From Rebecca billardiae RCC1528 (Eukaryota > Protista > Haptophyta): a stretch of 64,000 nucleotides of DNA. The position numbers were made by a program, and so were the translations under genes. The DNA lies in contig OZ251242.1 in NCBI GenBank assembly GCA_965240325.2, positions 372,001 through 436,000 on the forward strand, read 5' to 3'. Below, piece by piece: positions 4,204 to 59,485 of this stretch. How positions within the stretch are numbered: position 1 is the stretch's first letter; each line of letters starts with the position of its first letter. Below the pieces are notes generated by a model, which was not told where the DNA came from, did no database searches, and worked only from the letters and a program-made list of their open reading frames with translations.

Positions 4204-4253
4204 TACAGTTTTACTAAGAATAATAAAGAGACGCACACAGCTCAGGCAGGCGA
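4204..4253 (+). repeat. ~45-bp dispersed element, copy 1 (solo)
   Basis: tacagttttactaagaataataaagagacgcacacagctcaggcaggcga; near-identical to the copies at 8364, 39287/39351, 43651 and 50563. Confidence 0.9.
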
Positions 4254-39286: not shown

Positions 39287-39398
39287 TACCGTTTACTAAG
39301 AATAATTAAGAGACGCACACAGCTCAGGCAGGCGAGATTGACGCCCGCCAAATCTCGCCTGCCTGAGCTGTGTGCGTCTCTTATTCTTAGTAAACTGT
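39287..39398. mobile_element. Inverted pair of the ~45-bp element (112-bp hairpin, minimal MITE)
   Basis: taccgtttactaagaataattaagagacgcacacagctcaggcaggcgagatt-gacgcccgcca-aatctcgcctgcctgagctgtgtgcgtctcttattcttagtaaactgt. Confidence 0.9.
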
Positions 39399-40313: not shown

Positions 40314-41311
40314 CCCCTTACCGCAGTTCACTTTGCTTCGTATGGAAGCAAAGTTGACGGCGCCCGCTGAGGGCGCCCTGCGGCCAGTCAGGGCGTCTTT
40401 GGGCGCTGAACGCCGCATGACACTGTGCAGGCATGGTCTAGCTACCCTCAGACAGCCGCCAGACTGGTCCCTCCAGCTACAATGCCTCCACGATGGCATC
40501 CCGCGGCAGCGCGCCGAGCTGCCGTACGGGCGTGCGTGTCGTGCCCGCCAGGCTGGCCGTGTGCCCGCGACACCCGGCTGCACGCCTTGCAGCTGCTTCA
40601 GGCAGGTAGGCGATCGGTCGAGATGGCTGTAGGCGGTGTACGTACTGCACGCGCTGGTCTGCGCGCGTTCACATGACTCGTCGCGCTGAACTCACTCACC
40701 TGCCAGTCGCGCGTGACACGCTTGGCGGCTTGCCGCACGCAGCAGCCGCAGGCCGCGCGCGCGGCGTGATTGCCGAGTGCAAGTCAGCCAGGAGCTCGGC
40801 GGGATGGGCGGTCATGTTTCTTCGTCTGTTTCGGTGTCGATCACATGCGCGACGCGCGCGCCCCGCTGCGCAAGTACACCCTCCTCATTGCCGACGTCAC
40901 ACAGGAAGCCGCATGATGGATCTCGAGCTCGGAGAGCAGCGTCCGAGCACCACAGGCACTGACTGGCAGCCCGAGAGCCGACCGGCGGGTGACGTCCTTC
41001 ACCCCGCCTGATGCGGTACCGCGTGCGGCACCATACCGCAGCGATACGAGCACCTCAGAGGCGAACTGAGCACCCCTCAAAACTTTGCTTCTGGGCGTGC
41101 TCGAACACTCGTTTGGCACTCCGTTTGGACGCCGTGGCACCGGAGAAGGGGGAGGGCGGCGGCGATGAGGCTCGGGTGGCCCACGAACATGCTCACAAAG
41201 ATGCCTCTCAGCCATCGCGCGCCCTCTCGCGGCGTCCACCTGCCCGCCGAGCACGCACCCGCGGGGGCGAACCCATCTTTGCTTCGTATAGAAGCAACCT
41301 GCGGTAAGGGG
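40314..41311. mobile_element. ~1-kb MITE inserted in a (TA)n site
   Basis: tatat|CCCCTTACCGCAG...CTGCGGTAAGGGG|atata; a subterminal hairpin CTTTGCTTCgtat(g/a)GAAGCAA lies near both ends. Confidence 0.8.
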
Positions 41312-42875: not shown

Positions 42876-42962
42876 CTGCTGCCTGATGCTGGTCCAATTC
42901 TCGGGGAGCCCTTCCGACAACTCGTCGTTTTGGGGGCCCCCGTCACGTGTGCATGGCAGCAG
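42876..42962 (-). promoter_or_regulatory. SECIS element (type II, GUGA variant) in the GPx 3' UTR
   Basis: Minus strand: helix I CUGCUGCC-AUGC / GCAU-CA-GGCAGCAG; core gUGAC...CGAG; helix II GGGGGCCC / GGGCUCCC; apical AAAA followed by mini-stem CGAC-gaguu-GUCG. Starts ~35 nt after the stop. Confidence 0.85.
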
Positions 42963-42997
42963 TATCATGGCGCGCCCGACGCCCGAGCTCGCCGGCC

Positions 42998-43632
42998 CTA
43001 GCCGTGGCTCTGCAGCTCCTGCAGAATGTCCGGGACCACGTTGGCCACCGGCAGCTTGTGCGGGTACCGACGGACCACGCGGCCCGATCGGCTGACGAGG
43101 AACTGGGCGCCGCAGGGCGAGCGTAGAGTGCGCGGCGGCGGGCGCATGAGCGCGGGATAGGGCGCGCGTGGCGGTGCCCTCGCCGCGTGCGCACCTTCTC
43201 GAAGTTCCAGCGCACGTCACCGGTGCGCACAGTCGCCGCCTTTAGGAATCGGTACAGGGGGTGCGTCTCCGGGCCATTCACGTCGATTTTCGCGAAGACG
43301 GGAAAGGACACGCCATACTTGCTCACAAACTCGCGAATCTCGCGCGACGTGCCTGGTTCCTGCTCGTGGAACTGGTTCGACGGGAAGGCGAGCACCTCGA
43401 AGCCTCTCGAGTGCAGCCGCTCACGCACCTTGACGAGCTCAATGTACGTGAGGTTCGTCAGCCCTCATTTGGAGGCGACGTTGACGATAAGGCACACGCT
43501 GCCGGAGTACTGCGAGAGGTGTACTGTCGCGTTCGTGTCGAGCTCGCGCGCGTTGAAATCGTATACCGAGAGCGCGCCCGCAGATACAAAAAGGCTGATG
43601 ACTGCCATGACGGCCCCCGCGCGGGCCGCCAT
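42998..43632 (-). CDS. GPX: Selenocysteine glutathione peroxidase, 180 aa; join(43195..43632,42998..43102); Sec UGA at 43465-43467
   Basis: MAARAGAVMAVISLFVSAGA (signal peptide-like)...CLIVNVASK[UGA]GLT...LAFPSNQF..QEPG...KIDVNG..HPLYRFLK...WNFEK|FLVSRSGRVVRRY. GT-AG intron at 43103..43194. Confidence 0.95.
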
Positions 43633-43650: not shown

Positions 43651-43695
43651 TCGCCTGCCTGAGCTGTGTGCGTCTCTTATTCTTAGTAAACTGTA
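43651..43695 (-). repeat. ~45-bp dispersed element, copy 18 nt upstream of the GPx ATG
   Basis: tcgcctgcctgagctgtgtgcgtctcttattcttagtaaactgta. Confidence 0.92.
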
Positions 43696-46418: not shown

Positions 46419-50072
<3,654 letters not shown>

Positions 50073-50562: not shown

Positions 50563-50613
50563 ATCTCGCCTGCCTGAGCTGTGTGCGTCTCTTATTCTTA
50601 TTAGTAAACTGTA
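50563..50613 (-). repeat. ~45-bp dispersed element, last copy (solo)
   Basis: atctcgcctgcctgagctgtgtgcgtctcttattcttattagtaaactgta. Confidence 0.92.
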
Positions 50614-51764: not shown

Positions 51765-53024
51765 TCACACGCCTGAACCGTGAACGTCAGCGCCCGCGAG
51801 CCGGCGACCCACCGACCGACCCGCCCCGCCGGGCGCCGAGCGCGGCCGTGCCGGCGGCGTGCGCGAGCGGCCGGCTCCGCCGGCCGCCGGCCCCGCGGCC
51901 CCGGGCAGCGGCGGCGGCGCCGCGCGCCTGGCGGCCTCGGCTCGCGCGCCCGCGCCAGCGGCGACGCCGCTGCCCTCTCCCGCGCCCACCGCCTGCCGCA
52001 GCCATTCGAGCGGGTCGGCGGCGGCGAGCTCGAAGGACGGCGGCAGCGCCTCCATCCGCACGCTCAGCTGCATCCCCGCGTGCTCCGCCCACGGCTCCCC
52101 GCTCAGCGCCGGCGTCGTCGCGAGCTCGGCGCGCGCGCGCGCGATCGACACGAGCGCAGGCGTCGCCGACTTGCCGCGCTCCAGCGCGCGCGCTCGCGCT
52201 CGCGCCTCGCGCGCCTGCTCGTCGTCCTCGACGCCGAGGCCGTACAGGCCTGCGAGCTCGGCGCGCGTCCGCGCCTCGTCTCCCGCGCGCGCCGCGCGCG
52301 ACGCCTCGTCCAGCGCGCTCGCGATCAGGTCGTCGAGCGCGCTCGAGGCGCGGCGCGCGGCGCGGGACTCGCTCGCGTGCGCGCGCGCGGCCGCGGCGAG
52401 CGCCGCCGGGCCGTCCGCTGGCAGAAGCCCGTCGGCGGCGGCGGCGGAGGCGCGCGGCGACTGTGCCGCGCGGTACGGCGGCGCGGGCATCGCGCCCTCG
52501 CCGCGCTGCTCGGCGGCGCCGCCGCCCTGCGCCTCGCGCGCCGCGCGCGCGCGCGCGTCGATCACCGCCAGGGCGACCACTTGGCGCATGGCCGCGCGCC
52601 GGTCCGGCGAAGACTCTGCACGGCCGCGTCGGAACGTTCGTTGGATCCGGCTCGCGGCGTTGGCGGGCGAGAGCCGAGCCTCTTGGAAGGCGATGGCCGC
52701 GCGCTCTGCCTCCTCGCGCTCCGACATCTCCGACTCGCGCTCCGCCCACTCCTCCGTCGCCAGCCGCTGCCGATGCATCGCGATCGCGAGGCCGAGATCC
52801 GACCGACCTACCCACCGGCTCAGCACCTGCCTGCGCTGGCCGTCCGCCCAGCGCGCGCGCGTCGCGAGAGCCGGGCGTCGGCTCGGTGAGCGGGAGCGGC
52901 CGCTTGTGCCGCTCGCGCCGCCGGGCGACGGCTGCGCGTGCGGCCGCGGCGACGGCTGCGCGTGCGGCTGCGCTGTGCGCCGCGCGTGCGCGGCCGGCGC
53001 GTGCCGCGGCGGCTCGGCGGTGAC

Positions 53025-53060
<36 letters not shown>

Positions 53061-54020
53061 TGGAGGCGGTTCCAAGGAGGGCTGGCGGATGCGCAGTGGG
53101 CCGGCAGTGGATGGCACGCGCTCAGCGGCCGAGCGCGGCCGGGCGGACGTCGCGATCGAGCTCGACGCCGAGCTCGCCGGCGCGCGAGATGCGCCGCGCG
53201 CGCCGCGCGCGGACGCGGCCTGCGCCGCTTGCGGCGGCTGCGGCTGCGGCTGCGGCTGCGGCCGCGGCTGCGGCTGCGGCTGCGGCCGCGGCTGCGGCTG
53301 CGGCTGCGGCCGCGGCTGCGGCGCGGCGGCAGCCGATGCGCAGGAGTTGGCGCGGCTGCGCGGCGCCGGGGCGCGCGCGCCGAGCGCGTGCGCCGCGGGC
53401 GGCGCCGTGCACGCCGGCGCTGCGCCCTTCCTTCCACCGACGTCCCGCGCCGCGCCGCCGCCGCCGCCGCAGGCCGCGCCGCCAGCGGCCGTGCTCGCTG
53501 CGCCACCGCGCCGCGTCGGCACGCTCCCGTGCTGCTGCGCGCCGGCGGAGTCGCGCGCGGCCATGGCGGAGGGGCGCGATGGCTGGGCGTGGGCAGCGCG
53601 CGTGCACGCCGCGCTGCTTGGTGTGCACGCGCCGCCCTCGCTGCTGCGCCTTGGCCGCGCGGCGGCGGCGGCGGCGGCGGTGGCAGCGGCGGCAGCGGCG
53701 GCGGCAGCAAGCGGCGAGCGCTCAGCCGCGCCGCCCGCGCGGCATGAGCGCGCGGTGGACGCGCCGGATGGCCCGGGTATCCGGGGTATCCTCACGCCCG
53801 GGCTGCTCTGCCCGACGAGCACGGCCGACGACGGCGAGTCCAGCGTGCGAGAGGCGCGCGCGCCCGCGGGCACAGCCACGGCGGCAAGGAGCGCGTGCTG
53901 GCGAGCGACGAGCTCTGCGTAGGACGATGGCGGCGGCGGCGGCCCGTCGGGAGCGGCGTTCGCGGGCTGCGAGCGCACGAGCGAGCGGTCGGGCACGGCA
54001 GACCGGCGCTTCGCACCCAT
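51765..54020 (-). CDS. Low-complexity Ala/Pro/Arg-rich protein with one IQ-like motif; start uncertain
   Basis: C-terminal half of the 1311-aa track ORF: EEWAERESEMSEREEAERAAIAFQEARLSPANAASRIQRTFRRGR, plus a QP repeat. The upstream part of that ORF is the antisense shadow of 54460..56374. Confidence 0.6.
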
Positions 54021-58494: not shown

Positions 58495-59485
58495 GCGCCG
58501 CGCGCCGGGCTGGCGGGGTGGCCTGGACCCATGCGCGCCTTCGAACCCCCGGCGACCGCGCGCGCATCGGCTTCCTCCGCCTGCGAGTCGCCCGCGACCG
58601 CGCCCGCCGCCCGCTGGGAGTGGGTTGACCGCGCCCGAGCCTGCTCGCCGCCGAGCGCAGGGATGAGTTGAGCGCGGCGCGAGGCGGCGATCGCGATCGG
58701 GCGATCGCATGTGCCCACATGGGCCCCATCTGCCACGGCGCGACCGCTTCAGCATGCGTATGTGACCCCACTTGTCATGGTTGTCTCATGTCGGGTAGCA
58801 GGTGAGCACTGTCAGCCAGCGTGTCCGCGCGCGCGCGCGCAGGGCTCTGCGGGTCGGATGCCGCTCCGTGGCGTCTCGTGATGTCTGCACTACGCATACT
58901 GGGTGGCACGAGTGGTCCGCATCTGTAGTCATGTGGCGTCTGCTGATGCCGTGTTCGCGACGAGAACTCAAGCTAGCAAGTTCTTCTGGCAACCAGAGTT
59001 GCCGTCAGCATTGACGCACGTTGCGAGCTGGCAGTGCAGTGAAGGGCATGCCCTTGGTGGCCCACGCTGGGCAATACACGGCAATCGGCATGCCCTGATG
59101 CCAACTGTGACGTGTTTCCGACCCGTCTGGCCCTGCTCAGGTGCGGCGCGCGCGGACACGCTGGCTGACAGTGCTCACCTGCTACCCGACATGTGACAAC
59201 CATGACAAGTGGGGTCACATACGCATGCTGAAGCGGTCGCGCCGTGGCAGATGGGGCCCATATGGGCGCATGCGATCGCCCGACCACGATCGCCGCCTCG
59301 CGCCGCGCTCAACTCATCCCTGCGCTCGGCGGCGAGCAGGCTCGGGCGCGGTGAACCCACTCCCAGCGGGCGGCGGGCGCGGTCGCGGGCGACTCGCAGG
59401 CGGAGGAAGCCGATGCGCGCGCGGTCGCCGGGGGTTCGAAGGCGCGCATGGGTCCCTGCCGCCTCGCCAGCGCGGCGCGCGGCGC
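58495..59485. mobile_element. ~1-kb foldback element with ~340-bp inverted arms (58495-58833 and 59146-59485)
   Basis: Arms are near-identical reverse complements (mirror ORFs MGSHTHAEAVAPWQMGP on both strands). A diverged third copy lies at 16886. No clear TSD. Confidence 0.85.

Follow-up and report, generated by a model that had tools for sequence, protein, structure and literature searches.

Glutathione peroxidases (GPx), which mainly contain selenocysteine (Sec), belong to the most widespread selenoproteins of algae, and Emiliania huxleyi has ten GPX genes (PMC7539508). The algal Sec-GPxs described in PMC2375036 and PMC7539508 include the Chlamydomonas PHGPx, five Ostreococcus GPx and two Thalassiosira GPx. 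The locus studied here lies in the window, that is, the whole stretch of 64,000 nucleotides of the Rebecca billardiae RCC1528 genome that was analyzed, and it resembles the known algal genes in having a catalytic UGA within VNVAS-x-U-G, a GPx4-like fold of the monomeric class, several paralogs in the genome, and a type-2 SECIS element with a mini-stem in the 3'UTR, in which the known genes often have a G before the quartet. It differs from them in coming from a pavlovophyte-type haptophyte, Emiliania being the only haptophyte named in the accessible part of PMC7539508, and in two features missing from its closest paralog, a signal-peptide-like leader and a pair of N-glycosylation sequons. Genes of this kind being familiar from algae, the assignment of a Sec-GPx is in itself ordinary. 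What is mildly new is confined to the leader and the sequons, whose conservation hints that pavlovophytes may have a secretory enzyme of the Sec-GPx4 type.

Among animal enzymes, mammalian GPx4/PHGPx (PDB 2obi, 5h5q, 6elw) is one of the best structure matches, aligning end to end, and it shares with the window GPx the predicted Sec catalysis, the Gln, Trp and Asn residues, the short WNF region, and the lack of a tetramer-interface loop. It differs in its alternative mitochondrial, nuclear and cytosolic N termini, none of which is an ER signal peptide, and in the AUGA core of its SECIS. Extracellular GPx3 and the ER-resident GPx7 and GPx8 are the signal-peptide-bearing peroxidases of the same family. 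GPx3 contains Sec but belongs to the tetrameric class, and it gives only a partial match of 46 bits to the window GPx; GPx7 and GPx8 belong, like the window GPx, to the GPx4-like monomeric class, but they contain Cys and have ER-retention features. The window GPx would thus combine Sec with the monomeric class, and it has no KDEL-type end.

Structure of the GPx Gene

We consider it very probable that the locus is a functional nuclear gene of this haptophyte alga, which is arranged in two exons on the minus strand and encodes a GPx with a catalytic Sec (Table 1). The ATG at 43632 is the first start after an in-frame stop upstream, and the frame that opens there runs through the motif ...CLIVNVASK-TGA-GLTNLTY..., every element of the GPx frame proposed in the first-pass annotation being found in its place. 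The complete product of 180 codons (146 plus 34) requires the removal of a 92-nt intron, which the first-pass annotation did not mention explicitly, so that WNFEK is joined to FLVSR, after which exon 2 reads FLVSRSGRVV...SHG-TAG (43102-42998). The residues FPSNQF, with the NQF motif, and WNFEK, with the WNF motif, are intact and fall in the same columns in the relatives.

Protein searches were made with three pieces of the GPx used separately, with the exons unjoined and the TGA not read through. The N-terminal piece matched positions 1-32 of the Pfam profile PF00255 (GSHPx) with 24.6 bits (E 2e-5), and the piece that follows the TGA matched positions 34-108 with 79.3 bits (cut-off 27; E 1.9e-22). 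The TGA therefore corresponds to profile position 33, the one position left between these two matches, which is exactly the catalytic position at which GPx enzymes carry Sec or Cys, as had been proposed. A six-frame search of the whole genome with the GSHPx profile returned the window locus with 117 bits and one TGA inside the match.

The mechanical list of open reading frames contains, in the GPx frame, a 55-aa ORF (43465-43632) and then a 161-aa ORF that begins only after the TGA, at the GTG at 43428. The public gene calls at the locus are likewise fragments, of 70 and 161 aa, which are split at the TGA and run through the intron; the expectation that automatic annotation would truncate the gene was thus borne out, and the genome needs an annotation that takes selenoproteins into account. 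The public contigs of the locus retain the intron and therefore probably derive from genomic reads.

Table 1. Positions of the features of the GPx locus, of the repeat found near it, and of the genes for Sec machinery and SECIS-bearing redox proteins elsewhere in the genome. Positions without a prefix are those of the window.
Feature	Position	Strand	Description
Exon 1	43195..43632	-	146 codons: start, leader, GPx core to WNFEK; Pfam GSHPx matches
Signal-peptide-like leader	43570..43632	-	~codons 1-21: MAAR, 17-residue hydrophobic stretch, small residues (VSA / AGA)
Sec codon TGA, in frame	43465..43467	-	codon 56; catalytic position
Intron	43103..43194	-	92 nt, GT..AG (GTGCGC...CCCAG), 80% GC
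Exon 2, coding	42998..43102	-	34 codons, FLVSR...SHG, and TAG stop at 43000-42998
Whole type-2 SECIS	42877..42961	-	3'UTR; MFE fold with helix I, internal loop, helix II, apical mini-stem; descriptor matches
Helix I, 5' arm	42951..42961	-	7+4 nt; pairs with 42877-42889 across a 2-nt bulge
SECIS core, 5' side	42943..42946	-	G then UGA; C next at 42942
Helix II, 5' arm	42934..42941	-	pairs with 42904-42911; 8 bp, one G-U
Apical part	42915..42931	-	unpaired AAAA 42931-42928; 4-bp mini-stem with 5-nt loop 42927-42915
Helix II, 3' arm	42904..42911	-	pairs with 42934-42941
SECIS core, 3' side	42900..42903	-	C-GA-G
Helix I, 3' arm	42877..42889	-	pairs with 42951-42961
Dispersed repeat	43651-43695	-	
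Dispersed repeat	39295-39338	+	
Dispersed repeat	39352-39395	-	
Dispersed repeat	4226-4253	+	
Dispersed repeat	50566-50610	-	
tRNA-Sec	C12		anticodon TCA; 72 bits (threshold 47)
PSTK	C8		matches only L-seryl-tRNA(Sec) kinase structures, E 2.8e-7
SepSecS	C22		357 bits
SelD	C23		three exon matches
eEFSec	C23		best PDB match human eEFSec 5izk, E 2.5e-103; EF-Tu about 96 bits
SBP2	C11		sole PDB match SBP2 RNA-binding domain, 7zjw_B, E 7.5e-29
GPx (L009)			SECIS core AUGAC
GPx (L010)			SECIS core GUGAC / UGAU
SelT type, C-x-x-U (L107)	G000:C3:4492444-4492854		in-frame TGA; SECIS core AUGAC
Rdx family (L108)	G000:C16:67966-68184		in-frame TGA; SECIS core GUGAC / CGAC
Redoxin/Prx type (L111)	G000:C19:72908-73339		in-frame TGA; SECIS core AUGAC

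Paralogs and Relatives

The genome contains five GPx loci, three of which contain a single in-frame TGA, located at the catalytic codon, one of which has Cys there (L008), and one of which is a weak match. The TGA occupies the same codon in two paralogs (L009 and L010) and in 12 relatives from other samples, i.e. L024, L128 and 10 environmental loci, and in these last it lies within (V/I)VNVAS-x-U-G. The metagenome scan for GPx returned mainly bacterial loci of the Cys type. The closest paralog of the window GPx is L009 (67-69% identity), which is also the nearest relative of L024, a transcript-like contig that retains the TGA.

An ortholog is encoded by the intron-less contig L128 (JGI sample 3300016936, with an MMETSP transcript as its source label), with 74% identity to the N-terminal piece of the window GPx and 72% to the post-Sec piece. 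It keeps the TGA in the same motif, the signal-peptide-like leader and both sequons. Exon 1 of the window gene aligns to residues 1-90 of L128, ending in WNFEK, and exon 2 to residues 91-116, so that the splice junction leaves neither gap nor overlap. No recognizable SECIS was found in the 582-nt 3' part of L128 by the descriptor, a flexible stem scan, the covariance model R1 or Rfam. A unit of ~24 nt (…CACCTGCTCTAATGAGCT…) is repeated three times in tandem across the region of the stop codon (L128:530-610), and the 3' end of the contig may be mis-assembled; otherwise the SECIS of the ortholog may truly differ in form or lie farther away.

Two further environmental sequences were noted in the course of this comparison. 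L040 (Ga0115013_10116635, about 923-1330) has a catalytic TGA in a Sec-GPx frame that ends in KDEL and is followed by an AUGAC-type SECIS, and it would be an ER-retained Sec-GPx of another protist. L026 (Ga0247634_10028483) is a 1154-nt contig that has a Sec-GPx-like ORF with a catalytic TGA and, on the opposite strand, bacterial-type 23S and 5S rRNA, and it is likely a chimeric metatranscriptome assembly.

Class, Leader and Possible Localization of the GPx

When solved structures were ranked with the post-Sec piece, GPx4/PHGPx and poplar GPx5 came first with ~82 bits and matched it end to end (residues 1-90), followed by GPx7/8 with 59-62 bits and by GPx1/3/5/6 with 41-46 bits and only partial matches. 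The comparison with GPx4/PHGPx that had been recommended at the outset thus turned out in favor of that group, the pieces being searched separately. The long insertion before WNF that forms the tetramer interface loop is absent, and the sequence places the window GPx in the GPx4/PHGPx-like, monomeric class. No Cys follows the Sec position, and the protein hence lacks the resolving Cys of the thioredoxin type, which makes a GSH-dependent, GPx4-like mechanism the natural expectation for its reductant.

The N-terminal leader has a hydropathy peak of 2.96 and cleavage-type sites (-3/-1) after residues 18-22, and its composition fits a secretory signal peptide. N-x-S/T sequons are present at the same two places in the window GPx and in L128, one (NAT) ahead of the active site and the other (NLT or NRS) directly past the Sec; both the sequons and the leader are missing from the paralog L009. 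Targeting to the ER or the secretory route, which had been proposed from the leader, is plausible, since the leader and the two sequons are kept in the ortholog and are missing from the cytosolic-type paralog.

Alternatively, the leader might be non-secretory, so that the protein would be cytosolic, or the leader would serve as a membrane anchor or as the first part of a plastid-targeting presequence, a reading that concerns localization only and that we regard as rather unlikely. Proteins of haptophyte plastids also begin with a signal peptide, and the window GPx does not have a C-terminal signal of the KDEL type, both of which speak for this alternative. Nevertheless, no more than ~3 residues separate the predicted cleavage sites from the beginning of the GPx fold, leaving no room for a plastid transit peptide, and the retention of leader and sequons in the ortholog and their absence from the closest paralog also argue against it.

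Pavlovophytes might keep a dedicated, N-glycosylated Sec peroxidase of the GPx4 type in the secretory pathway, which would have arisen when a duplicate of a cytosolic PHGPx-type gene gained a signal peptide and sequons, a proposal to which we give an even chance. Such an enzyme would be an independent algal counterpart of the extracellular GPx3 or the ER GPx7/8 of animals, in which Sec is combined with the monomeric class.

The SECIS Element

A SECIS-shaped fold had been noticed about 35 nt past the stop codon. It starts 36 nt beyond the TAG, and it comprises helix I, the core, a helix II of 8 bp, the unpaired AAAA, which is preceded by CC, and the mini-stem (Table 1). The published SECISearch pattern is NTGA_(10-13)_AA_(15-39)_GA (PMC2375036), and in the window element the quartet is separated from the AA by 11 nt and the AA from the GA by 25-27 nt, so that it agrees in pattern and spacing with every published primary criterion. 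At the level of sequence and fold it also has the parts that define a SECIS structurally, i.e. the non-Watson-Crick quartet (UGA-N / N-GA), helix II, the unpaired apical AA and helix I.

A strict descriptor, which added to the published pattern a minimum of 8 contiguous bp for helix II and of 5 bp for helix I, gave two matches on both strands of the window (128 kb), one of which is the GPx element and the other lies at 40766 (+). The same descriptor gave no match in 295 kb of other DNA from the same genome and none in 30 simulated sets of 128 kb. Five other TGA-containing redox genes of the genome (L009, L010, L107, L108 and L111) have comparable elements at similar offsets past their stop codons. 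The hairpin of the window GPx is more than a chance fold.

The opposite reading is that the UGA acts as a stop or is passed by near-cognate read-through, that the GC-rich hairpin at 42961-42877 folds by chance, and that any real SECIS would lie elsewhere or be absent. Several results could be taken in this sense. The folding energy of the hairpin is unexceptional for a GC-rich sequence (z = -1.4), and 8 bp is near the lower limit for a helix II. The Rfam SECIS models (RF00031 SECIS_1 and related; gathering threshold 35 bits) gave no match in the window at E<=10, and the covariance model R1, built from the element of the paralog L010 alone, scored the GPx SECIS with 15.2 bits (E about 0.15) as the second match in the window. 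The lack of a recognizable SECIS in the ortholog L128 points in the same direction.

The Rfam models, however, were also silent on the GPx paralogs of the genome, and among nine other SECIS candidates they detected no more than two, L028 (26.8 bits) and L024 (21.5 bits), both of the AUGA type and both below the threshold. Because the same models miss or under-score the other candidates tested, their failure in the window carries little weight; we judge them insensitive to these algal elements, and the Rfam threshold is in our judgment not a defining feature of a SECIS. The single-sequence model R1 discriminated poorly and ranked a non-SECIS hairpin first. Given in addition the agreement with all SECISearch primary criteria, the clean background of the descriptor, the location 36 nt past the stop of a gene with a TGA at its catalytic site, and the same kind of element in the five other redox genes, we consider a chance hairpin very improbable and retain the reading of this fold as the SECIS of the GPx gene.

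In animals, a G before the UGA quartet is the less common form of the SECIS. The first-pass annotation had described the GUGA core of the window element in these terms, and the description holds for animals but not for several algae, in which the G is the usual form, nor for this genome, in which it was found in three of the six candidates seen, with the window GPx included, the remaining three being AUGA. Together with a long mini-stem, the G is the rule in Ostreococcus and is common in Chlamydomonas and in a sponge (PMC2375036, PMC3473315). The GUGA_AA type-2 elements of these organisms resemble that of the window GPx in the G before the quartet, the GA on the 3' side, the unpaired As 11 nt after the quartet and the apical mini-stem (PMC2375036, PMC3473315). 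The window element differs in scoring below detection by RF00031, and R. billardiae differs from Ostreococcus, whose elements are nearly all GUGA, in mixing GUGA and AUGA 3:3 among the candidates seen. The GUGA core is thus a variant at the level of the lineage rather than an anomaly or a defect.

Three other hairpins of the window were considered as SECIS candidates and rejected. The top match of R1, at 59035-59105 (+), is a perfect hairpin of 9-10 bp with GUGAA...UGAU flanks but has neither an apical AA nor a Sec-ORF upstream. The unit that contains it (58780-59195 (+)) is bounded by inverted repeats of ~45 nt (58783-58830 and 59150-59197) and resembles a small transposon-type element. At 40766-40805 (+), the second descriptor match has a GUGAU core, a helix II of 8 bp, AA at +11 and GGAU, but no frame with a TGA was seen upstream on the plus strand, and on the minus strand the element overlaps what looks like the beginning of an ORF (ATG near 40816), to which it is antisense; the match is probably due to chance despite the very low background of the descriptor. 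A third candidate, found with a relaxed descriptor at 49852-49800 (-) (GUGAA/CGAG), falls within an open frame, starting near 50070, that is of low complexity and rich in Ala and Pro, and was judged a false positive. A MAFFT alignment of nine SECIS candidates was not in structural register.

Selenocysteine Machinery and Proposed Recoding

The genome encodes a complete Sec machinery, consisting of tRNA-Sec, PSTK, SepSecS, SelD, eEFSec and SBP2 (Table 1), and it has a sizeable selenoproteome. A search for tRNA-Sec, eEFSec and SBP2 had been suggested as a check on the recoding of the UGA, and all three were found in addition to the other components. The closest named relatives of the eEFSec, with 77-78% identity, are the proteins of Diacronema lutheri and Pavlovales sp. 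CCMP2436, which are annotated as eEFSec, and this similarity puts the genome with the pavlovophyte haptophytes. Two further candidates were discarded: L016, taken for an eEFSec, proved to be an organellar EF-Tu, and L132, taken for a PSTK, proved to be a PFK-2/FBPase. A tight cluster of tRNA genes (Ser, Pro, His) together with an EF-Tu-like gene was observed at G000:C41:46788-48372 and 53020-53919, and contig 41 is probably an organelle genome contig.

From these elements the following course of events can be proposed. Once the gene is expressed and the 92-nt intron has been spliced out, the ribosome would meet the UGA at codon 56, with the core of the SECIS ~426 nt downstream in the mRNA. The SBP2 of the genome would bind the type-2 SECIS and recruit eEFSec carrying Sec-tRNA(Sec), so that Sec would be inserted at the UGA instead of termination. 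The hydrophobic N-terminal leader would most likely route the protein to the ER or the secretory route, where the GPx would reduce hydroperoxides via the Sec with the conserved Gln and Trp-Asn residues. The recoding that the first-pass annotation had proposed is supported by the Pfam match across the TGA, the TGA in the relatives, the SECIS, the full machinery and independent assemblies of reads.

An in-frame stop is also the classic mark of a pseudogene, and the locus could be a former Cys-GPx in decay whose catalytic codon has mutated to a stop; a search of a protein collection for a spliced transcript from this species found none, which would fit such decay. We consider this, too, very improbable. 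The frame past the TGA is fully intact (E 1.9e-22 against GSHPx), both splice sites are preserved and the exons join exactly, the SECIS is at the expected place, and the same TGA is found in two paralogs, in the ortholog transcript (72-74% identity) and in 11 other relatives, all of which argues against a pseudogene. The TGA could also stand for a TGC or TGT, misread or misassembled, in an ordinary Cys-GPx, a possibility that the first reading had named; one base change would suffice, and the Cys paralog L008 is an example of such an enzyme in the same genome. This explanation is effectively refuted by two Logan assemblies of separate runs (ERR14847148 and ERR14847151), which reproduce 1370 and 1109 nt of the locus, TGA and SECIS included, with 0 mismatches. 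TGA also occupies this codon in the paralogs L009 and L010 and in the ortholog.

A Dispersed Repeat near the GPx Gene

A sharply bounded dispersed repeat of ~50 nt, which is AT-rich at one end (ACAGTTTACTAA...) and ends in ...GGCAGGCGAGAT, was observed in the window, with unrelated flanks on both sides of its copies (Table 1). A 28-nt core of this repeat occurs in five exact copies in the window and in 962 exact copies genome-wide (469 forward and 493 reverse). The repeat could be a MITE remnant or an element of the promoter or 5'UTR type. One copy lies ~300 nt 3' of the stop codon of the paralog L010, two copies in the window form a near-perfect palindrome at 39295-39395, and another ends 19 nt upstream of the ATG of the GPx gene.
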